This document shows, one piece after another, positions 27,919 through 52,027 of a stretch of 64,000 nucleotides of DNA (positions are counted from its first letter, which is position 1; each line of letters opens with the position of its first letter). The position numbers and the translations under genes were made by a program. Where the stretch lies: positions 18,884-82,883 of the forward strand of contig RQSC01001332.1 of NCBI GenBank assembly GCA_013416795.1, written 5' to 3'. The DNA is from Prasinococcaceae sp. CCMP 1430 (taxonomy: Eukaryota > Plantae > Prasinodermophyta). The notes beneath the pieces were generated by a model, which saw nothing but the letters and a program-made list of their open reading frames with translations, did not search any database and was not told the origin of the DNA.

Positions 27919-28009
27919 TTTAGGGTTACATGTACTTTCACGTTGGTGTACTTACGTGTCATCATATTATCAAATGTACCATCAAACAGGTACTACGGAT
28001 CTAGGGTTT
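27919..28009 (-). promoter_or_regulatory. Telo-box-like motifs (AAACCCTA / TAACCCTAAA) upstream of the THUMP-like gene
   Basis: TTTAGGGTTA at 27919 and TAGGGTTT at 28002. Similar motifs at 2620, 14913, 20851 (AAACCCTAAACCC) and about 56189. Confidence 0.5.
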
Positions 28010-28028
28010 ACAAAAATACTGTACATGA

Positions 28029-28105
28029 AGTCTCCCGTGGGTACATAATCTTAGTATTTGAATCAACAGTTCACCTAAATACTTTACAGTCTCCCGTGGG
28101 TACAT
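28029..28105. repeat. 18-bp perfect direct repeat in an AT-rich divergent promoter
   Basis: AGTCTCCCGTGGGTACAT at 28029 and 28088. Confidence 0.85.
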
Positions 28106-28338
28106 GACCGGATTACTTGCATAAACCAAACCGCCCTGCAACGGTTTCGAGCGATGCGCCGGCTTTTCCTTCCCCAGTGCGTTCATTTTGATATGTTATT
28201 TCAGTTAAGGCATATCAATTTGAATGAGGGATGTTGCGCGGTAGGTGCCGGCGGGGCGCCACACACCGCGCGCGTGGCGCTCCCCCCTCCCCCCTCCTCA
28301 CACCTCCGCCGCCCCTCTCCCCCACCCCAACCCGCGCC

Positions 28339-31300
28339 ATGAGCGCGGGTGGGGCGCCGGCGGAGGCCTCGGACGGCGCGGCGTCGGCGTCGGGGGGCGG
28401 CGGCGGCGGCGCGGCCTCGGCGTCGGGCGGCGGCGCATGGAGGAGCTGGCTGCCGTACGGCGGCAGCGGCAAGCCCGCCGAGCTGAGGGTGGAGCTCGAC
28501 TACGAGGTGGGCGCCGAGGGGGATGGCGGCGACGATCGCGCAACCGTGACGCTGCGCGAGAGCCTGTTCTCCGACGACGCGAGCGCGGCGCGGGCGCGCG
28601 ACTCGCTCGTGGCGGCGCTCGACGCCGCGACGTCGGGGTCGCGGCGGCCGCGGCTNNNNNNNNNNNNNNNNNNNNNNNNNNNNNNNNNNNNNNNNNNNNN
28701 NNNNNNNNNNNNNNNNNNNNNNNNNNNNNNNNNNNNNNNNNNNNNNNNNNNNNNNNNNNNNNNNNNNNNNNNNNNNNNNNNNNNNNNNNNNNNNNNNNNN
28801 NNNNNNNNNNNNNNNNNNNNNNNNNNNNNNNNNNNNNNNNNNNNNNNNNNNNNNNNNNNNNNNNNNNNNNNNNNNNNNNNNNNNNNNNNNNNNNNNNNNN
28901 NNNNNNNNNNNNNNNNNNNNNNNNNNNNNNNNNNNNNNNNNNNNNNNNNNNNNNNNNNNNNNNNNNNNNNNNNNNNNNNNNNNNNNNNNNNNNNNNNNNN
29001 NNNNNNNNNNNNNNNNNNNNNNNNNNNNNNNNNNNNNNNNNNNNNNNNNNNNNNNNNNNNNNNNNNNNNNNNNNNNNNNNNNNNNNNNNNNNNNNNNNNN
29101 NNNNNNNNNNNNNNNNNNNNNNNNNNNNNNNNNNNNNNNNNNNNNNNNNNNNNNNNNNNNNNNNNNNNNNNNNNNNNNNNNNNNNNNNNNNNNNNNNNNN
29201 NNNNNNNNNNNNNNNNNNNNNNNNNNNNNNNNNNNNNNNNNNNNNNNNNNNNNNNNNNNNNNNNNNNNNNNNNNNNNNNNNNNNNNNNNNNNNNNNNNNN
29301 NNNNNNNGCGGCGCTGGCGCGCGCCCCCGGTGCCGTGCAGCAGCTGCTCGCCGCGGCGCTCAGCGGCAGCGCGCACGCCATCGAGGAGGGCTGCGGGGCG
29401 CTCGGCGCGCTCGCCGAGAGGGGCGGCGCGCCGCTGGCGTGGTTCGGGGGCGGTGCGGACGAGGAAAAGGGTGGTGGTGGTGGCGATGGTGCTGGAGGAG
29501 GAGGCACCGCCGGTGGCGGCGCTGGTGGCGGCACCGTCGCGGCAGCGAGCCTCCTGCCGATGCTCGCGCCCGGCGTATGCGACGCCAGCCTGGTGAGCGC
29601 GCTGCGGATGCTCGCAGCGGTGTGCCTCGCGTCGCGCAGCGCGGCCGAGGCGCTTATGGTGGGAAACGAGGTTGTCGGCGAGGGCCTCATTGATGAGTTC
29701 GGAGAGGGCTTCGAGGGCGATGAGGTGCACCGCCGAGTGGAACGTGGCGCCGTCGGGAACGCTGGGGAAGGCGACGGAAGCAGCGGTGACAGAAGTGGCG
29801 GCGGGACGCTGCGTGCCGATCCGCCGGCGTCGCCCTGCGCCGAGCTCTACTTGCGCGTGCTCGCGCTCTGCCGCGCCGGGGACGATTTGGGCACCGCAGG
29901 TCTTAGGAAAGAGCGCGCGCCGGCGGTGCGGAGGCACGCGCTCCTATGCCTGGGCAACGCCGCGCTGGCGCCGCGCGTGCGGGCGCGCGTGCTGGGGGAC
30001 GCGCGCGCGATGGGTGCGCTCGCCGACGCCGCGGCCGTTGGCGGTGCCACCGAGCGCGTGCGCGCGCGAGGAGCAGCGCCACGCGTGCCGCTGCTGCCGC
30101 GGCCGCCGCAGCCGCGGCTGCCGCGGCAGACGGCGCGGCGCGTGACCCTTCTGGAGGCGGCGGAGGCAGCCTGCCTTCGACGCCCACGGCGTCCACCCCA
30201 ACGCTCACCAAGGCCCACAAAGCGCTCAGCGGGCTGCTGCGGGGATTTTTCTCCGCGTCGACTCCCGACGTGCGTGACCCTGAGGGCGATGGTGACGATG
30301 GCATTGCAGAGGAGAGCACGCCATCGCCGTCAGCTGCGGTATTCGCGGTGTCCGAAGAGGCCGAAGCCGCCGATGCGGTGGGCGCGACGGACGGGGGTGA
30401 GGACGTGAGCATCGTTACAGGCATGGACACGCAGCAGGCGCAGCCACCACAACCAAGCGATACGGGAGGTGCCGATAGCCCCCGCAGAGCAAACGATACC
30501 ACGCCGCCCCACGACGACGCGCGGACGCCACAGCAAACACCCGAAAATGTACTCAGCAGCCACCTTGGCACTAGTGCCGACGGTGAGGAAAGCAACGAGG
30601 AGGGTGATTCTAGTGGCGACGCCCTCGTCTCGCCGCCGACGACTCAACCCAGCCAGCTGGCGGACCCGCTGTCGCCCGCCGCGGCGAGCCCTGCGAGCCC
30701 CTCGCCCGCCGCTCTCGGCCGTCTGGTGCACTCGCCGCCGCGCACGATCCGGAGCAGTGCGACCACAGGCGCGAGCCCGAGCCCGCTGCGCAGCGCCAGC
30801 CTCGAGGCGCGCTCGCCCGCGCGGGTGGTGGTCGGTGGCGCGGGCGGCAGCGTGCGGGGCGGCACGCCTGCCGTCTCCACACCCGCGCCGCCCTCGCCGG
30901 CGGCCATTCTGGAGGCCGAGGCCGGCGAGGGCGCGGAGCTGGCCAGGGAGGCCGTGCGCCTGGCGTCCGTTCGCGCGCTAGCGATCCTCGGCTGCAACGA
31001 GCGCGTCGCTCGCTGCGTGGGGCAGCGCTCGCGCGCCGAGATGACTCGCACCGGCGTGCGCGTGCTCAGCCTCGACGGGGGCGGGATGAAGGGCCTCGCG
31101 ACGATCGCGCAGCTCAAGGCGATCGAGGCTGCGGCGGGCAAGCCCATCCAGGAGCTCTTCGACCTCATCGTGGGCACGAGCATCGGCGGGCTCCTCGCGG
31201 TCGCGCTGGTCCTCAAGCGCATGACGCTCGACCAAGTCGAGACCGAGGTCTTCATGCGCATGTCCAAGCAGGTCTTCAACGACGCCAACGACGGCGCCGA

Positions 31301-34959: not shown

Positions 34960-37804
34960 TTACGACGTGGTAAAAAAGCCCGCCATGCACAGCACGCCGT
35001 CCATGAGCTCACCCACGCGCCCCCACGCGCTCGCCGTCGCTCCGTGCAGCTCGCCGCACGCCTCGCGCAGGTCGGCGCGGCTCCCCAACACCTCGGCGTG
35101 CGTGGCCAGTAGGCGCGCGAGCAGCGCCTGCACAAGCTCGAAGTTGCCGCCGCGCTCCGTCTCGCGGCGCAGCATCGCCAGCACGGTGCCGAGCGCCTCG
35201 CGCGTGGCGACGTCGTCGCCCACCACCTCCAGCTCGGCGATGGCCGCGTCGAGCTCCCCCGGCGAGAGCGCCCGCAGCTCCTCCAGCGCCTCGCCGCCGT
35301 CCGCCTCGTGTGCGCGCGCGAGCGCCGCCAGCCGCAGCGCGCCCGCGCCCTCGACGCCCGGCGCGACCCTCCGCACGCGCTTGTTGGCCGGCGCCGGGTC
35401 AGTATCGTCCTCGTCCTCCATATCGCCGTCGCCGTTCTGGTCCGCCCCCCCCACACCAAAGAAGCTCACCGCCGCGTCCACCGCTCCCGCCGCGTTGCCG
35501 CTGGTGGCCTTTTCCAGGTCGCCAAGCCCCGGCAGGAAAAAGGGCGCGCTCTCCGGCTTGGACACGGCCTCGGCGGGCTTGGAGCGCGCGCGGATCTCGT
35601 CGAGGCGCACGAGCCCCTGCCACTTCGCCTTGGCGAGCATGCCGAGCGTGACGGCGCCGCCCTCCAGCGGCTCGGGCCCGGCGCCTTCGTTGGCGTTCGC
35701 CCCCCCGAGCTCGGCCTCGGCGGCGTCGAGGATGGCGCGGCCGTCCAGGGCGTCCTCGTCGTCGGCGCCGTCCACCTCCACGCCGTCGCTGTCACTCCCA
35801 GGGTCGCCGGCCAGCCCGAGCGCCTCGTCGTCGGAGTCGAGCGCCACGCCGTCCGTGCGCGCCCACCCGGACTCGCCCGCGGCGTCGTCGCCCCCCTCCT
35901 CGCCGTCGTCCTCGCCCGCGCCCACCTCGGGCATGGCCACGCGCCGCCGCATCCTCGCGCTCGCCCCCTCGCCGCCGCCGTACACCTCCGAGTTCGCCCA
36001 CAGGTAGACGGCGCGCTGCTCCGAGTGGGCGGTGGCCATCGCCGCGCCGTTGGGCGAGAGCGCCACGGCGACGGCGGGGCTCGCCAGCCGCATGACGTCC
36101 CTGCACGACGAGGCCTGCACGTCCCACACGCGCACGGTGGCGTCCATGGCGGCGCTCACCACCAGCCGCGCGTCGGCGGAGAAGGCCAGCGCCGTGGGCC
36201 TGTCAACGTGGCCGCCGAAGCGCCGCACCACGCGCGGCGCGTGCGGGGCGGCGTCCACCACGCGCACGTCCAGGTCGGCGCACGCCACCGCCAGCAGCCG
36301 CGCCGACGCGTGCCACGCCGTGCACACGGGCGCCGCGGGCAGCGGCAGCAGCGCGCGCAGCCGTCGCGATCGGAAGGCCCACACCTTCACCTCCCCCCCC
36401 ACGCCGGCGCCGCCGGCCTCGCCCGCGCACACCGCCACCGACGCCGCCACGCGGTTGGCGGCGCACGCGTGCACGCCGACCACCGCGCCGGCGTGCGCCG
36501 CGTTGTCCGTCCCCAGCCGCGCGTCGGCGTACGAGCCGCGGTGCGCGCCGCTCTGCACGTTGAAGCGCTCCACGCGCCCGCCCTCGGTGCCCAGCAGCGC
36601 GTAGTTGCCGCACGCGCTCATGCACACGCAGCTCACGGGCCGCAGCCTGAGTTTTTGGAGAAAGAAGGTGCGTGTGTGTCAGTGCAGCAGTCTTCGTCAG
36701 CATCACAGACGCACACCGACATGTTCCTCAGCGCGACATTCGCGCGCACTCGCGCGCATTCGCGCACCTCTTGCCCGGGGGCGTGAGCACGTGCTCGCCC
36801 ACCGCCAGCTTGTCCAGCCGCCAGGTGTACGCCGACGTGGCCCCCTTGTGCGCGGTGACGCAGCTCGCCCAGTCGCGCTCGCGCGCGGCGCACGCGGCGA
36901 GCGCGCGCACGGGCGGCAGGCGCAGCTCGGCCTCGGAGACGCCCAGCTTGCGCGCGCGCGCCGTGACGCCGCCCTGCGACACCTCGCGCGACTGGTGGTC
37001 CTGGAAGGTGGAGAGCGCGCGCAGCGTGCGGTCGTCGCCAGCCGAGAGCAGCCAGCGCCCCTCGATGCCGTGGTACGCCAGGTGGCGCGGCGGCGCGGCG
37101 TGGCCGCAGCGCGAGCGCAGCAGGCGCGCCGCGGCGCCGTGCGCGGCGTCGGCCTGCGTGCTCCCGAAGGCCCACTCGCGCAGCGCGTTGTCGCTCCCCG
37201 CCGACAGCAGCATGCACTCGGCGGCGGCGCCCGACGCGGCGCGCAGCGCGTGCAGCGCCGTCACGGCGCCGTCGTGCGCCTCCTTGATGACTCNGTCGTG
37301 CAGCGCCACGCGCCCGTCGGCGAGCCCCGCGGCCACCACGTCGAGCGCGGGCGCCGCCACGAGCGCGCGCACGCCCGCGCCGCCGAAGGCGTCGAAGGTG
37401 TACAGCTTTCGCCGCGTGGCGACGTTCCACAGCTGCATGGCGCCGTCGGCGCCGCCCACCAGCACCTTGTTCAGGTACGTGGGCGGGTGGCACAGCGCCG
37501 TCGGGACCATGCCGCCCAGGTCGATGACGAACTCCGGCTCGATTTCGGTCGGGGGCGACTTGCGCGGTGCGCCGGCGCCGTCGCCCGGCGCGGGCGCGCG
37601 CGGCACCGCCCACGCGAGCAGGCTTCCGTCCCTCGCCGCGCCGAGCAGCATGTCCGCATCCACTCCTCGACCTTCATCGAGGCGATGCCAGCGCCGGCTG
37701 CGAGGGCGCCTGCGGTGAGCAGCGCGCCCGAGGGGCTCCCAAGTGGCGCGCTGAGCACATCCGCCGCCCCGCCGCCGCCCGCTGCGCGCGCCGCCGCGCC
37801 ACCC
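34960..37804 (-). CDS. UTP21: WD-repeat U3 snoRNP protein UTP21/WDR36; 5' end lost at N
   Basis: ALCHPPTYLNKVLVG, QLWNVATRRKLY, SACGNYALLGTEGGRVERFNVQSG, WD repeats and a C-terminal KPESAPFFLP. Intron about 36648-36766; single Ns at 37294 and 37805. Confidence 0.93.
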
Positions 37805-38725
37805 NATACGTACATTTGAAGGCACACGCACACACATGCATTTCAAACTCATCGACATCTGCATTCACACTGGCCAAGATAGAAACATTTAATTTGGATT
37901 GACCAAGATCTGGTGAAGGTCATAATGAATGTCCTTTGTGTTTGTAATGGAGTTTGATATGGGGTTTGTACGCGCATTAGCATTAGGGCACGCCGCGCGA
38001 GGCGGGCCTGGGGCCCCGCCAGGCGCGGGCTCGGCAGGGGAGGAGGGTGTGGGTGTGTATGCCGGCGTACGGCACACTGCGCGCGGCGAGCAGGCGAGCG
38101 GGCAGGCGGGCGGCGTCGCGCCGCTCGCCGGCCGCGTCCTTCGCCTTCCCTTGCCTCGCTGGCCGCTCGTTCCTGCGACCGCGGGCGCGGGCGAGAGGTG
38201 CGCGCGCGAGAGAGGGGAGCGGCGGCTGCGGCGGCTGCGCTCGCGCCGGGGGTCTGCGTGCGCTGCCGCCGTGCGTGCGCCCTCCTCTGCCTCGCGGCTG
38301 CCGCCGCCGCAGCGACGCGCGGGGGGCTCGCGTGCGCGCTGAGCTTGGCGCCCTCGCGCCGTGGCGCCCACGCGCCGTCTTTCCTTTTCATTTTGCGACC
38401 TCTCCGAGACGTGATGTTGCGTTGCTGCAAGCAATGCTGGCACCAGACTCGAGTCGCGGGCACCAACAACAACAACACGCCCGCGGCGGTGACGATCAAC
38501 TTTGGCTGACTGATCCCGGACGTCGACGAACTCGACGCGCCCCGCGCGCGGGCCGCCGCGCGCGACGCGTGAAATGAGCGCGCGTGGCCGCACCGCCGCG
38601 CGTGCGATGCAGCCACTCCCCGGCGAGCCCGGCGCTGACTCGCCGCGCTCACCACGCGCACGCGCGCGCGCACGCACACGCGCGCTTCTTCCCCGTCGCA
38701 CATCACGTTGCCAGCCAGCGCAGCC

Positions 38726-38962
38726 ATGGGCTGCGCGCGCGACGAGCTCGAGGGCACCTCCACGGTGTCCGAGCTCCGCAAGCACGTCGACGACTTCCGC
38801 AAGGCGTCGATGGAAGAGCACACCAAGTGACTCAAGGACACGCTGGGCTCGCTCTTCGGCGCGCTCGGCGGCGGCTCGGCCGCGACGTCCGACAAATCGG
38901 CGACCGCTGCCGCTGGCACCGTGGCCCTGGACCTGCGCGCCAACGCACCGCCCGGGGCGTAG
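38726..38962 (+). CDS. Small (78 aa) candidate selenoprotein with in-frame UGA at codon 35
   Basis: gccATGG start; MGCARDELEGTSTVSELRKHVDDFRKASMEEHTK-TGA(38828-38830)-LKDTLGSLFGALGGGSAATSDKSATAAAGTVALDLRANAPPGA-TAG. GC3-biased codons on both sides of the TGA; SECIS-like element downstream. Confidence 0.72.
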
Positions 38963-39091
38963 GAAGCGCGGGCGCCGACGGCGCTCCTGCAGCACATGCG
39001 CACGTATTCGTCCGCAGGGCCACGCACGCACAAAGACGCAGGCGCACGCGCGAACGCGCCCGCATCCGCCGACCGCCAAGCAGCACGACGC

Positions 39092-39150
39092 ATGACGGGA
39101 GCTCTTCGCACAGAGCCGGCTCGCATCGAGCCGGCGGCGGGCCCCCCGAG
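39092..39150 (+). promoter_or_regulatory. SECIS-like stem-loop (type II, with apical mini-stem) in the 3' UTR
   Basis: A-UGAC (39092-39096) ... CGAG (39147-39150) quartet. An 11-13-bp helix GGGAGCUCUUC / GGCGGGCCCCC with 2 mismatches. A perfect apical mini-stem GCCGGCUCG-cau-CGAGCCGGC. The canonical AA is missing and helix I is weak. Confidence 0.55.
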
Positions 39151-40490
39151 CGACCGCCGGCCGACTCCTATCGCCACACCGCGAGAGTCGCCGGCGGGTG
39201 TGCCCGACGCCGAGGCACGGCGGCGCCCCTTCGCTCCAAGGCATGCGTGCGCGTCGTGGGAGGAGAAATGAGCGCGTGCGCCATTCAGGGCTGTGCGCCC
39301 TCTCCGTGGGAAGGTGCGGACGCGAGCTCGCGCGCGTGCGCGTCCCCAACGCGTTGGGCATCGTGCGGGCGGGCGGGGAAGGGTGTGCTCGGGGTGCTGC
39401 AGCACACGCCGGCGCAGGATGGGACTTGTGCGTGCGTGTGCGCGTGTGTGAGGCCGCTCTCGCGCTGCTCGCGCGCGCGCGCAAGCCCGTTGTCACGCCG
39501 GTCGACCTTCTTCCCACGGTCGTCTCGGCCCTCAAACTTTGTTATTTGGGCGAGAGCGAAGGGGGGCGCTAACTAAGCTTCGGTGCGGTTGGGGCCGCGG
39601 CAGGTGCCGCGCGCCCCGGGCCGTCCGCACACGTTGCGTGCCAATGTGTCCACACTCTTGACTCCCTCTTCTTCCTTGGGAGGCGCGCCCCAGCCGTGTG
39701 CGTGCGAGCGTTTGCTTCCGCCCTTGTCGCTGGCCGTCGGCTGACCGCACCGCCTCGATCGCGCGCGCGCAGGGCGCGCAGCCACCACCGCCGGCGCGAG
39801 CTCCTCTCCGCCTCGCGCCCACCACTCGAAGTTGTAACGTTTTGTACCCTACTACTACGACGTGCGCGCGTCCCTCTGCGCGCTGTGTGTTGTTGTGTCT
39901 TCTTCTCTGGGTGTGTGTCAGCGTTTGTGTGGTCGCAGGGCACAATCGCAGCCGTACCGTTGTGCTGACTGGAGTCCCAGGTCTGCCGCTTTGGAGGGCA
40001 TCATGGAGGCGCGGGCGTGCCACATCGCGCACGCGCGCGATCGAGGGGCGGTCTGGCGCGCGCGCGCGCGTGCGTGCGGGCTGGCGGGGCGCTGCGGCCG
40101 GGCAGCACGCACGCCAAGATCGCGGTCGCGCGTGGAAGTTGCTGGCGAACGCCTGTTGGTGCCACATTATGCGCGCCACGCACGCGCGGAGGAGTGTCTC
40201 GAGGGTGGGGTAGGGGGGCTCTCTTCGCCGAGCCGCGCGCTGGCGTGCTGCTCGCAGGCACGCGAGCGCTCGTGCTGCGCGCAGCGCTCGTGCGCGAGGA
40301 CGGACACACGTGTGTGCACACACGCGCCCCCCAGAGCATCCCTGTCTCTCTCGCGCGCGTGCGCAAGCGAGCCCCCCCGCGCGCGCGCCGAGCTTGACGT
40401 GTGGTCTTAGAATAGGGTCGATCCTCACTTACAGGGCCGCGATCGCGGCGACAAGGCAGGGGCGTTTCGCGCTGTGAGCAATCTCTGCGC

Positions 40491-41534
40491 TTAGAACATC
40501 TCCTCCTCCTGGTGGGTCATGATGGTGCAGTCCGACGAGGGGTACGCCACGCAGGTGAGCACGAAGCCCTCGCCCATCTGGTCGTCGTCAAGGAACGACT
40601 GGTCCGACTGGTCGATCTCGCCGGCGGTGACCTTGCCCGCGCACGACGAGCAGGCGCCCGCGCGGCACGAGTAGGGGAGGTCGATGCCCTCCTCCTCGGC
40701 CTTGTCGAGGATGTACATGTCCTCGGGGCACTCGATGGTCTGTTAAGCGTGTGCAGAAGAGGAAGGCCGGCCGTCAGCGCGCGCTCGCACAGAGGCGGAG
40801 AGGTGCGCGCAAGACGTGGCGCTCGCGCCTGGGGACTCGACGCGAGGGGTGCCTGCGCCGGGGGGCGCCGACAGCGGCGCGCGGCGCGAGCGAGGCGCCG
40901 CGCGGCGGCGGAGCGGCGGCGGCCGCCGGCGAGGGTTTCTCCCGCGGGGTTTTGCGCGCGCGCGCGCGCGGCCCCGATCGGTTCGGAGTGCAGGGCACCT
41001 CCCCACCCAACGCGATCGCGATCGCGATCGAGGGCCTCGCGAGCACCGCGGCGCCCTCCGCGAGGACCCTGATCCCCCCCGAGACCGCGCGCGATCGCCG
41101 CCCGCGCGCGCGCCTGCGCGCGCGCCCCCGCGCCCGAGATCCCGCCGCCCAAGCGCATCACCGAGGCGGCGACGAGCTCCGCCCTAGGCATGGCCCACGA
41201 CGCGAAACCCATCACCCCACTCCCCACGCGCGGCGCGTCGCACGCCATCCCCGACATCTCCCCTCCCCCCTTACGAGCGCACACAAGCACCCCGCTCCCC
41301 CCACAGCCACCAGCGGCCGCTCGCGCGGGCGCTCCCCGCGCTCGCCGCGCTCCCCGCCGCGCTCTCCGCGCCCCTCACCTGCTCGCCGTCGGGCGTCACC
41401 AGCGTCACGGTGTACATGGCCGTCACCGAGCGCGCGTTCACCGGCTTGAGGCCGAAGCGCGCCGAGGCGCGCGGCGCGCGGAGCGCCACGGGGCGGGCGG
41501 CGAGCGACATCGAGGAGAGCTGGGCGGCGGCCAT
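40491..41534 (-). CDS. PETF: Plastid [2Fe-2S] ferredoxin (photosynthetic type)
   Basis: Exon 41534-41379 (transit peptide + [12 protein letters not shown]) and exon 40739-40491 ([33 protein letters not shown]...FVLTCVAYP). Confidence 0.97.
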
Positions 41535-47477: not shown

Positions 47478-48233
47478 GTGCGTGTGTTGCGTTTGTTCAC
47501 GTGTGTGTGTGTAAGTCCGGACACGTTCGAGCGCGCGTGTGTGCGACGCCTCCCGCGCGCCCGCACCTGCGCGAGCCGCGCCGCGAGCTGCCCCGCCGTG
47601 ATCTCAACGAAGCCGCCCTCCGCGGAGTACGCGGACGGCGGCAGCGGCGGCGGCTCCGAGGGCGTCAGGCCGAAGGGCGTCGCGTCGGCGGCGGCGCTGC
47701 ACAAGCGCGCAAGTGAACGCGTGTGTGTATGTGTTGTTGTGTGTGTGTGTGTGTGCGTGCGTGTGCGTGTGTGTGTGTGCGTGCGTGTGTGTGTGAACAT
47801 GTGTGTGTGTGTGTGTGTGAGTTAGGTTGTGCACGCGTGCATGGGTATGCGGTAGAGATTGCACTGTCGGAGTCGGCGAGAGTTGACGCCCGCGCGCTCG
47901 CACACACTGCTCATGTAACACAAAATCTCACACTAACACACAAACATACACACACACACACACACAAACACACACGCACACACCACTGACGCACGCACAC
48001 ACACGCACCTCACCGCCCCCTCGGAGAGCGTCATCGCGGCCGCCAGCCGCTCGACGGCGACGTCTGCGTCCCACGCGTCGCCGTCGGCGTCGGCGCCGCT
48101 GTGTGTGTGTGTGTGTGTGTGCGTATGCGCGTGTGTGTGTTATTGCGCTGTCAGTGCCAGCGCACGTGGCCATACGCGCAAACACACACACACGCTGTGA
48201 ACGATAGCAGTGCACACGCGCACACACACACGT

Positions 48234-48271
<38 letters not shown>

Positions 48272-48546
48272 ACACACACACACACAGGCGCACACACAAG
48301 ACACGCACGCCGGCACACACACACACGCACGCACGCATGCACGCACGCACGCATACACACACACGCGCACGCACACGCACGCGCACGCACGCGCACGCAC
48401 GCGCACCTCGCGCCGTTGCGTTCGTCCGCGTCGGCGGTGAACCAGTTGGCGCCGGCGTCGGTCTGCGACTCGTCGGCGGCGAGCAGCGCGCCGAGGTCGA
48501 CGAAGCTCTCCTCGTCGCCCTTGGAGACGGCCGCGCGCGCGCGCGC
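46239..48546 (-). CDS. Rhodanese-like domain protein (5' end in N-gap)
   Basis: Exons FVEITAGQL; [28 protein letters not shown]; [15 protein letters not shown] (active-site CxxGxRS); [16 protein letters not shown]; then a Gly/Cys tail. Confidence 0.85.
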
Positions 48547-49539
48547 NNNNNNNNNNNNNNNNNNNNNNNNNNNNNNNNNNNNNNNNNNNNNNNNNNNNNN
48601 NNNNNNNNNNNNNNNNNNNNNNNNNNNNNNNNNNNNNNNNNNNNNNNNNNNNNNNNNNNNNNNNNNNNNNNNNNNNNNNNNNNNNNNNNNNNNNNNNNNN
48701 NNNNNNNNNNNNNNNNNNNNNNNNNNNNNNNNNNNNNNNNNNNNNNNNNNNNNNNNNNNNNNNNNNNNNNNNNNNNNNNNNNNNNNNNNNNNNNNNNNNN
48801 NNNNNNNNNNNNNNNNNNNNNNNNNNNNNNNNNNNNNNNNNNNNNNNNNNNNNNNNNNNNNNNNNNNNNNNNNNNNNNNNNNNNNNNNNNNNNNNNNNNN
48901 NNNNNNNNNNNNNNNNNNNNNNNNNNNNNNNNNNNNNNNNNNNNNNNNNNNNNNNNNNNNNNNNNNNNNNNNNNNNNNNNNNNNNNNNNNNNNNNNNNNN
49001 NNNNNNNNNNNNNNNNNNNNNNNNNNNNNNNNNNNNNNNNNNNNNNNNNNNNNNNNNNNNNNNNNNNNNNNNNNNNNNNNNNNNNNNNNNNNNNNNNNNN
49101 NNNNNNNNNNNNNNNNNNNNNNNNNNNNNNNNNNNNNNNNNNNNNNNNNNNNNNNNNNNNNNNNNNNNNNNNNNNNNNNNNNNNNNNNNNNNNNNNNNNN
49201 NNNNNNNNNNNNNNNNNNNNNNNNNNNNNNNNNNNNNNNNNNNNNNNNNNNNNNNNNCGCTCGCCCTCGCGGGCGACCTCCTCCGGCCCGCGCGCGCGCT
49301 CGTCGGCGAGGCGCCGCAGTGCGCCGGGGAACCGCCCCTGCGCGAATCCCTCCCTCTCCGGCACGTTGTCAGTGTCTTTACACCTACACATCCACGGTGC
49401 GCCACAGCGCAATTTTCCTTCCGTTTTTATTTGTGGATAACGGACGAGCGTGCATGCGTTTTTATGTGCCGTTTTATTGTTTTTTTAAAGACTTTTTTTG
49501 TTTTTTTTTGAAATATTTCGGATGCATTTTGATGGTAAA

Positions 49540-50215
49540 AGGCTGTAGTCGCATGCGCGGGCTGTGGATTCAACGCACGCACACCGCGTGATATGTACAT
49601 CACCATGCACGTATATAGAAAATGGAACCCGATTCAACGCATGCCCACCGCATGATAGGTACATCATCATACATGTGTATAGAATATGGAATCCATTTTA
49701 TGTGTTTTCTTGTGCAGTATCCATTTTCGGCGCGACAGGATGTGGCAGCAACCTTGGATTCAACTCATGCAAACCGCGTCGTGGGTACATCACTATGCAT
49801 GTATATGGAAAATGGAATCCATCCAATTCAACTCATGCACACAACGTATGAGCTACATCAACGTGGATGTATACAGAAAATGGAATCCAATTTGTGTGTT
49901 TTCTTGTGCAGTATCCACCTTCGGCGACCGGATGTGGCAGCAGCCTTGGATTCGGTCACACTCGCAGGTCGTGCGCTCAGCTGCGGCATCCCCCTTATGC
50001 GCACGTCATAATGCATTTACAATGTTAATGGATTCCATTATACGTGATTTTCTGTGCAGTATCCACATTCGGCGGCGGCGTCTGTGTGGTCAGCTGGATT
50101 CCATCACATGCGCATGTTGTGGATTCGACTCAGGTCGGAGATATCATTATATTTTAATATGCAATATGGAATCCATTTTGTGTGGTTTGATGTGCAGTAT
50201 CCAAATTCGTGGCCG
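49540..50215. repeat. AT-rich composite degenerate tandem repeat
   Basis: GTGCAGTATCCA at about 49712, 49906, 50054 and 50192. ATGGAATCC/ATGGATTCC at 49686, 49812, 49880, 50028 and 50166. Recurrent GATTCAAC(G/T)CA(T/C)GC and GTACATCA sub-units. Confidence 0.85.
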
Positions 50216-50978
50216 ATCGCGCGCGCCCGCCGGGTCGCGCGCGCGCCGGCGCGCCCGCCGAAAACTCTCCGGAAGGCGCCGCGCCAATTTGTCTTTAAAA
50301 TACATTTTAATGAATTACTTGACGGAATGAAAAGGCATTGAAATGTGCACCGGGTGGATGGAGCGCGCGAGCGAGGCCGAGGCGGCGGCGGCGGCGGCGG
50401 CGGCGNNNNNNNNNNNNNNNNNNNNNNNNNNNNNNNNNNNNNNNNNNNNNNNNNNNNNNNNNNNNNNNNNNNNNNNNNNNNNNNNNNNNNNNNNNNNNNN
50501 NNNNNNNNNNNNNNNNNNNNNNNNNNNNNNNNNNNNNNNNNNNNNNNNNNNNNNNNNNNNNNNNNNNNNNNNNNNNNNNNNNNNNNNNNNNNNNNNNNNN
50601 NNNNNNNNNNNNNNNNNNNNNNNNNNNNNNNNNNNNNNNNNNNNNNNNNNNNNNNNNNNNNNNNNNNNNNNNNNNNNNNNNNNNNNNNNNNNNNNNNNNN
50701 NNNNNNNNNNNNNNNNNNNNNNNNNNNNNNNNNNNNNNNNNNNNNNNNNNNNNNNNNNNNNNNNNNNNNNNNNNNNNNNNNNNNNNNNNNNNNNNNNNNN
50801 NNNNNNNNNNNNNNNNNNNNNNNNNNNNNNNNNNNNNNNNNNNNNNNNNNNNNNNNNNNNNNNNNNNNNNNNNNNNNNNNNNNNNNNNNNNNNNNNNNNN
50901 NNNNNNNNNNNNNNNNNNNNNNNNNNNNNNNNNNNNNNNNNNNNNNNNNNNNNNNNNNNNNNNNNNNNNNNNNNNNNN

Positions 50979-51268
50979 GGCCGAGGCCGAGGCCGAGGCG
51001 GAGCGCGCCGCGGCGCTCGCCGCGGAGAAGCCCGCCAAGGCCGCCGGCTACGTGCCGCCCTCGCAGCGCGCGGCCGGCGCGTCCAGCAGCGCGCTCGGCA
51101 GCAAGGGCTTCCAGGGGGGGATGAACGAGCAGCTCTTCCCGGTGCGTGTGGGCGAGAAAGTGTGCGCGTGCGTGTGTGTGTGCGCGCGAGTTTGTGTGCG
51201 CGTGTGTGTGTCGCGTGTGTGTGCGCGTGTGTGTGCGCGTGCGCGTCCAATACGCTTACGCATGCACG

Positions 51269-51340
<72 letters not shown>

Positions 51341-51372
51341 TTCACACGCACACGCACACACACGCACGCATT

Positions 51373-51405
<33 letters not shown>

Positions 51406-51830
51406 ATTCACACACACGCATTCACGCACACGCATGCACACACACGCATTCACGCACACGCGCGCACCGCAGGACCTCGACCTCGCCGCCGCCAAGGCCG
51501 CGAGCAAGCCCAGGCGCGCCGCGGGCGGCGCCGCGGGCGTCGGCGCGGGCGCCGCGCCGTCGTTCGGCAGCGCCTTCGACGCGCCCTCGGTGCGCCCCAA
51601 GCTCAAGCTCGACAGGCCCGCGGGCGCCGCCGCCGACAAGGAGCGGACCGCCGAGGACGAGGAGGCGGAGCGCAAGGCCAAGATCGCCGAGAAGAAGGCC
51701 GCCAAGAAGAAGAAGAAGGTCACCGTCTCGCTCATCGAGCTGCAGGCGGCGGAGATCGCGCGCGGCAACACGCGCGTGGGCGCGGGCTTCGGCGCGAGCA
51801 ACACCCGCGACGGTGCGTGCGAGCGAGCGT

Positions 51831-51925
<95 letters not shown>

Positions 51926-51933
51926 CGTGTGTG

Positions 51934-51973
<40 letters not shown>

Positions 51974-51995
51974 TGCGTGTGTGTGTGTGTGTGTG

Positions 51996-52027
<32 letters not shown>

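Follow-up and report, generated by a model that had tools for sequence, protein, structure and literature searches.

We analysed a 64-kb stretch of DNA, referred to here as the window, which contains a short forward-strand gene whose reading frame is interrupted by an in-frame TGA. The frame opens with an ATG in the context cagccATGG at position 38726 and comprises 34 sense codons, the TGA, 43 further sense codons and a TAG; a first-pass annotation of the window had proposed this arrangement, and the sequence bears it out to the base. The features of the gene and its transcript are collected in Table 1. On one side the gene is neighboured by a minus-strand ORF for a WDR36/Utp21-type double β-propeller protein (36728–37864; Pfam PF25171, 2e-30, and PF25168, 9e-25), which is transcribed away from it, and the two genes may have in common a divergent promoter around 37865–38087. 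An AT-richer stretch near 37890–37990 lies inside that interval. On the other side, and convergent with the gene, is a minus-strand ORF for a plant-type 2Fe-2S ferredoxin domain (40491–40718; Pfam Fer2, 1.5e-20).

Table 1. Features of the TGA-containing gene, its transcript and the associated 3′UTR element. Positions are those of the window.
Feature	Position	Strand	Evidence
Exon 1, 5′UTR (at least), without ATG	38088..38197	+	Spliced metatranscriptome contig
Intron 1, GT..AG, ends 7 nt before the start codon	38198..38718	+	Contig joint 38197 -> 38719
Exon 2, whole coding sequence and SECIS-like element	38719..39313	+	Continuous contig piece 38719–39311
Coding part 1, codons 1–34, MGCARDELEGTST...EEHTK	38726..38827	+	Sequence; relatives 85–97% identical; purifying selection, P=1e-4
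In-frame TGA, proposed Sec codon 35	38828..38830	+	Kept in L001, L002, L003 and L004; present in DNA contig
Coding part 2, codons 36–78, LKDTLGSLFGALGGG, variable Gly/Ala/Ser linker, V-x-LDLRA	38831..38959	+	P=4e-4
TAG stop codon	38960..38962	+	Sequence
Conserved 3′UTR island around the SECIS-like element	39045..39198	+	3 substitutions vs close relative
SECIS-like type II hairpin	39092..39150	+	Folds, pair table, shared motif
AUGA core	39092–95	+	Same core in L001, L003 and L004
Helix 2	about 39097–39111 with 39136–39146	+	Fold
5′ bulge AGA	39112–14	+	Fold
Helix 3, loop CAU	39115–23 with 39127–35	+	Fold
3′ core GA	39148–49	+	Same core in L001, L003 and L004
Optional 3′UTR intron, GT..AG	39314..39772	+	Contig joint 39311->39771 (cut +2)
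Start of exon 3, 3′UTR; contig ends there	39773..39844	+	Same 783-nt metatranscriptome contig

The DNA in this region is approximately 72% GC, and since its opposite strand carries ORFs of 500 codons, the open frame, taken alone, could be due to chance. Upstream of the TGA the third-position GC is 0.97 and downstream of it 0.91, compared with about 0.7 in the flanks, a bias that by itself is unable to assign the strand. By comparison of sequences between lineages, as set out below, the conservation pattern of the ORF is beyond chance.

A 783-nt metatranscriptome contig (X15 record 8), which comes from a slightly divergent strain, corresponds to 38088–38197, 38719–39311 and 39771–39844 of the window and includes the complete ORF with its TGA as well as the hairpin that lies downstream. 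Both of its joints fall at GT..AG introns on the plus strand and the contig therefore represents a spliced plus-strand mRNA. The gene is thus transcribed and spliced, giving an mRNA of at least three exons, the second of which holds the entire 78-codon frame. The ATG at 38726 is the first in the recovered part of the mRNA, there being none in the recovered part of exon 1, and a pyrimidine-rich acceptor (ccag) stands directly before the ATG in the window and in two records of a more distant lineage (L003 and L004, described below). A gene on the antisense strand was considered and ruled out by the plus-strand GT..AG introns and by the absence of comparable antisense selection. The 3′UTR intron starts about 350 nt past the stop codon, and other RNA contigs lie inside it (39332–39618), a pattern that points to alternative splicing or retention of the intron, or else to transcripts with an alternative 3′ end. 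With an exon junction beyond the UGA as well as the TAG, the mRNA could become a target of nonsense-mediated decay.

We next consider whether the TGA is genuine. Each of 14 runs, filed under two organism labels, contains all sampled words of 38300–39700 (11 of the runs are flagged, with a query, as DNA and the other 3 are of unstated kind), and a DNA contig from a 2020 run spans 38206–40300 with 0 differences to the window, TGA included. The spliced mRNA runs across the TGA without a joint, and none of the differences listed lies at 38828–30. The TGA is also found in three independent metagenome assemblies of relatives. It is not an assembly error: where the first-pass annotation had asked for the triplet to be confirmed, the DNA contigs carry TGA and not TGC or TGT.

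Relatives of the gene were sought at the protein level. With the read-through protein as query, its stop written as X, a word-indexed search yielded only P0001, the truncated ORF of a close relative; the 34 N-terminal residues, submitted to an exhaustive HMMER search, led to P0002, which derives from metagenome contigs. Both ORFs end exactly at the position of the window's TGA. Two repeat proteins that appeared in the same HMMER search were judged spurious, as was the sole match in a scan of JGI metagenomes, a bacterial GlmS that we attribute to chance. A word-indexed search with the 40-aa ORF gave no match, and an exact-product look-up of the window's 34-aa piece gave no record.

At the nucleotide level, the close relative (L001 and L002) is approximately 94% identical to the window and keeps the ATG, the TGA and the TAG. 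Two further records, L003 and L004, are from marine metagenome assemblies in ENA (63% GC), L004 being a Tara Oceans scaffold; they align to the window only over 38718–38884, at 84%, which takes in no more than the initial 160 nt of the coding sequence, all flanks being too diverged to align, and they thus represent a distant relative. Their frame reads MGCARDELEGTSTISKLRKHVDDFRRASVEEHTA-TGA-LKNTLGSLFGALGGG, followed by a variable linker, VVLDLRA and a TAG. The TGA is aligned at the same codon in the window and in all four of these records; the first-pass annotation had listed the lack of such a TGA in other algae among the grounds for rejection. The gene next to the orthologue in L003 (2829–3699, minus strand) encodes a triose-phosphate isomerase fused to cupin domains according to precomputed Pfam assignments; this differs from the neighbours in the window, and local synteny is therefore not conserved.

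Selection was assessed by comparing the window with L003, substitutions being placed at random and each frame and strand scored separately. Codons 1–34 show 16 nucleotide differences that lead to only 5 amino-acid changes (P=1e-4), and codons 36–55, beyond the TGA, show 13 nucleotide differences and 3 amino-acid changes (P=4e-4). After the UGA, serine is retained by switches between its codon families, TCG->AGC, in which all 3 bases are changed, and TCC->AGC. For the same pair of sequences there was no significant selection in the other two sense frames. One antisense frame gave P=0.013 before the UGA, which we take as a by-product of the signal in the sense frame, and the remaining antisense frames were not significant. 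The stretch from the TGA to the TAG is thus coding, and frame-specific selection on both sides of the UGA shows that the protein is translated through it. A pattern in which conservation is confined to the region upstream of the TGA, raised at the outset as an outcome that would speak against a selenoprotein, is not what we see, as protein-level conservation extends over both sides.

The region beyond the TAG behaves differently in the close relative, whose coding sequence differs from that of the window by 2.5–3% whereas variable patches of its 3′UTR differ by 10–20% and contain a net 2-nt indel. Since this indel lies past the TAG, the region after the TAG is not coding, and it likewise rules out an ORF at 38996–39271 in the 3′UTR. 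One of the patches (39006–39044) is hypervariable, with 15 substitutions and two 1-nt insertions relative to the 94% relative, and is placed between two well-conserved UTR segments; a further 14 substitutions relative to the close relative fall in 39199–39266.

The conserved island between these variable stretches contains a SECIS-like hairpin. Its ATGA begins 130 nt downstream of the TAG, exactly the distance given in the first-pass annotation, and 264 nt downstream of the UGA; across the lineages the latter distance ranges from 264 to 572 nt. A hairpin of the same layout is present in L003 and L004, 402 nt after the TAG, in a UTR that is otherwise unalignable. The 3′UTR of L003 also has a tandem duplication of approximately 53 nt (909–1013) that is single-copy in L004 (668–720). 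This duplication is located after the stop codon and ahead of the SECIS-like element, and the spacing of the two is therefore not constrained. The window, L001, L003 and L004 have in common the motif ATGACGG..GC..CAGAGCCG, which is unique in the 64-kb window, where 0 copies would be expected by chance.

When each element was folded alone, the SECIS shape was the minimum-free-energy structure. In this fold the AUGA is unpaired and a pyrimidine-pyrimidine mismatch adjoins the G.A/A.G position. Helix 2 has 10 continuous base pairs, a bulge and 1 further base pair in L004, and 10 of 12 positions are paired in the window. In both lineages an unpaired AGA bulges from the 5′ side only, preceded in the window by AC. 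Helix 3 is 8–9 bp long and is closed by an apical loop that reads CAU in the window and GAAA only in L003 and L004. At its 3′ side the fold ends in the GA. Because the AUGA of the distant copy was misplaced in a MAFFT alignment, pairs were compared by a script anchored on the core. The helix 2 positions read cc GC GC GC ac GC CG UG CG uc UG CG in the window and cu GC GC CG GC UG GU CG CG GU CG in L004, so that at pairs 4, 7 and 10 both bases have changed without loss of pairing (three distinct sequences being compared).

An earlier structural alignment of SECIS elements, SECISaln, found that only UGA/GA is invariable, that helix 2 measures 11–16 bp and that the A-run (or C) is located in the apical loop or in internal loop 2 (PMC2647825). 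The element described here has the AUGA/GA core, an unpaired A before the UGA and a helix 2 of about 11. It resembles canonical type II SECIS elements in its AUGA with unpaired A, its 3′ GA, its helix 2 of about 11 bp and its 5′ internal loop, and also in having helix 3, a short apical loop and a location in the 3′UTR. It differs from them in that AGA or ACAGA takes the place of the A-run (AAR), which is absent, and in that the 3′ core is CGAG or UGAG, in contrast to the UGAN/KGAW of SECISaln, with no KGAW present. No match to the Rfam SECIS models, including any SECIS_1-type score, was obtained at E<=10 on 141 nt from either the window or L004, and a search of the whole window at gathering score gave no SECIS match.

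Considered in isolation, the window copy of the hairpin is not exceptional. At least 9 of 11 stacked pairs, the value that it attains, are reached at 11 of the 207 ATGA sites in the window, and its folding z of -1.0 is ordinary for its GC content. The copy in L004, with 10 of 11 pairs, is matched by 1 of the 207 background sites. As the window copy alone is not unusual, what speaks for a SECIS is the position of the hairpin, its core, its conservation and its covariation, the last in few sequences. The comparison shows a hairpin that is conserved and covaries, and we regard 39092–39150 as a good, if not proven, candidate for a functional SECIS. A second ATGA...GA hairpin at 39268–39325 (9 of 11 stacked pairs) was examined and set aside, as it straddles the boundary of exon 2 and intron 2, is poorly conserved, would be destroyed by splicing and is probably a chance occurrence.

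The reading that we favour, with a probability of roughly 0.8, is that of a nuclear selenoprotein gene in which selenocysteine (Sec) is inserted at UGA35 by way of an atypical type II SECIS to yield a protein of 78 residues. The first-pass annotation had suggested a small, hitherto unannotated selenoprotein that has Sec at codon 35 and belongs to no known family, and the conserved UGA, the conservation that flanks it and the SECIS-like hairpin lend this suggestion support. UGA codon 35 would be decoded co-translationally as selenocysteine under the direction of the element in the 3′UTR, whose working parts would be an AUGA/GA kink-turn core, a helix 2 some 11 bp long, an AGA at the site of the A-run and helix 3. 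Conservation of the UGA and translation on its two sides are shown by the sequence comparisons, and from these and the hairpin we infer that the inserted residue is Sec. None of the Sec machinery (tRNA-Sec, EFSec, SBP2, SecS, PSTK and SPS) is encoded within the 64-kb window, in which no tRNA was found.

It is improbable that the UGA is instead subject to programmed readthrough, by which a near-cognate tRNA (Trp, Cys or Arg) would give rise to a 34-residue and a 78-residue form, neither containing selenium. The selection data support translation past the UGA and not the identity of the residue inserted there, the Rfam SECIS models do not recognise the hairpin, and CUC follows the UGA in all lineages, a C after UGA being favourable to readthrough in eukaryotes. 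This UGA-CUC context had been flagged on first inspection as permissive for simple readthrough; its conservation holds in every lineage, but readthrough is made less likely by the conserved SECIS-like element. Stimulators of readthrough are normally found directly after the stop codon, whereas the conserved AUGA...GA hairpin with its covarying helix 2 lies 264–572 nt downstream of the UGA, as in the layout of a SECIS. Moreover, synonymous variation just past the UGA (AAG->AAA, CTG->CTC, TCG->AGC) argues that there is no conserved local RNA signal. Genes with programmed UGA readthrough are similar to the gene described here in possessing an in-frame UGA followed by C and a conserved extension in the same frame, but here no local context is kept beyond the CUC, and the conserved RNA element lies far from the UGA and is built on a SECIS core.

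Less probable again, and by our assessment very unlikely, is that only a 34-residue peptide ending at the UGA is made, with the downstream conservation due to a regulatory RNA or other non-coding element. Gene callers run on the metagenome contigs predicted exactly this 34-aa product (P0002), and the N-terminal part shows the highest conservation. An RNA element would, however, conserve nucleotides and not amino acids, whereas the substitutions after the UGA concentrate at synonymous sites in the same frame only (P=4e-4), with serine kept even through TCG->AGC. A chance ORF, a pseudogene or an assembly error in GC-rich DNA, for which one might cite the very long chance ORFs that are common here and the failure of GC3 alone to assign a strand, has almost no probability given that independent DNA and RNA data agree on the TGA, that it is identical in three lineages, that the mRNA is spliced and that there is purifying selection on both sides of the TGA. 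Selection on both sides of the UGA is therefore taken to rule out a 34-residue-only product, a pseudogene and a chance ORF alike.

The selenoprotein thus predicted would be an 8-kDa protein, soluble or peripherally attached, that starts with MGCARDELEGTST, which is invariant, and contains a charged amphipathic helix. Its N-terminal part is the most conserved, the first 13 residues, Cys3 included, being invariant. Residues 10–30 form a moderately amphipathic charged helix with a computed hydrophobic moment of about 0.5, and there is no transmembrane-like segment, in that no 18-residue stretch has a mean hydrophobicity >0.32. The Sec codon is placed between this helix and an invariant LK-D/N-TLGSLFGALGGG, so that Sec would stand where the helix meets a motif of small residues, U-LK-D/N-TLGSLFGALGGG. 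After this motif come the variable Gly/Ala/Ser linker and the conserved V-x-LDLRA.

Cys3 is the sole cysteine of the 78 residues, and there is no CxxU motif. The absence of a thioredoxin-fold CxxU and of membership in a known family had been remarked upon before, and both remain the case, with no Pfam domain detected in either half of the protein in either lineage. For this reason, namely a single cysteine and no CxxU, we propose that Sec might act as a lone redox-active selenol, which could perhaps pair with Cys3 or with a small thiol as a selenenylsulfide, or link two protein molecules through a diselenide. Searches of the ESM Atlas and the PDB with pieces of the protein sequence returned no look-alike and no relative of solved structure. 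A Cys homologue was not found in the word-indexed search (78 aa, X at the stop) or in the HMMER search, the sensitivity of which is limited by the short query, and the orthologue with Cys that had been suggested for land plants found no counterpart in these protein searches within the same limit. Lipidation at Gly2, which had also been entertained, is doubtful. The PROSITE pattern PS00008 is G-{EDRKHPFYW}-x(2)-[STAGCN]-{P} after removal of Met, and the GCARDE found here has Asp6 at the [STAGCN] position.

A new family of selenoproteins is seldom found in eukaryotes, and almost all of the known ones are thiol-oxidoreductase-like. Of the known selenoproteins, SELENOK and SELENOS share several traits with the present protein: they are small, have one Sec and a Gly-rich segment that is mostly unstructured, and lack both a CxxU motif and any enzymatic domain recognisable from sequence. 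They have an N-terminal transmembrane helix and Sec 2–3 residues from the C-terminus, whereas the protein here is without a hydrophobic segment, has Sec at 35 of 78, and shows no sequence similarity to them that we could find. The selenoproteins of thioredoxin-fold or Rdx type (SELENOW/T/H/M/F, GPX) have a CxxU/UxxC-type motif in a thioredoxin-like domain, which is absent here.

Lineage-specific selenoproteins have been described from algae, among them MSP, 'Hypo', SymSEP and PDI_e (Jiang et al., 2020; PMC7539508). These resemble the present case in being Sec-only or nearly so, in their narrow range and in belonging to very large selenoproteomes (PMC7539508). The three new families reported there carry thioredoxin-like, AhpC or PDI domains (PMC7539508), whereas the protein here is without a domain and without a Cys form that we could find. 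That survey proceeded by BLAST to known selenoproteins or NR together with SECISearch (PMC7539508), a procedure that would miss a Sec-only protein restricted to its lineage and served by an atypical SECIS. The motif of the protein is absent from one supplement of that study.

We therefore turn to what kind of family this might be. The gene probably represents an undescribed, lineage-restricted family with a variant SECIS, and published lists hold unnamed 'Hypo' entries that it could equal. The Aureococcus selenoprotein lists published by Gobler in 2011 and 2013 reportedly include unnamed hypothetical selenoproteins. The DNA studied here may itself come from an alga nearer to the pelagophyte type than to green algae, with its GC content of about 70% and a presumably very large selenoproteome. 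We incline, with some reserve, to the stronger view that it is the founding member of a Sec-only family confined to one algal lineage, with no Cys form or redox fold, with Sec in a helical motif of small residues and with a SECIS that lacks the A-run and is overlooked by current SECIS models. If so, surveys driven by SECIS and homology would undercount even the largest selenoproteomes known, and a non-classical role for Sec would be possible, for example as an intermolecular diselenide or as a lone selenol on a scaffold peptide. Confirmation would add one more family, the use of AGA for AAR would broaden what counts as a functional SECIS, and the selenoproteomes of bloom-forming marine algae would prove to be still incomplete. 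The gene is short and, as metatranscriptomes indicate, is expressed in the sea.

Elsewhere in the window there are low-GC islands at 28001–30000 and 48001–52000, with a GC content of 0.37–0.48 compared with about 0.70 elsewhere. They coincide with runs of N at 28656–29307, 48547–49257 and 50406–50978, which may reflect gaps left by the assembly where the DNA is AT-rich or repetitive.
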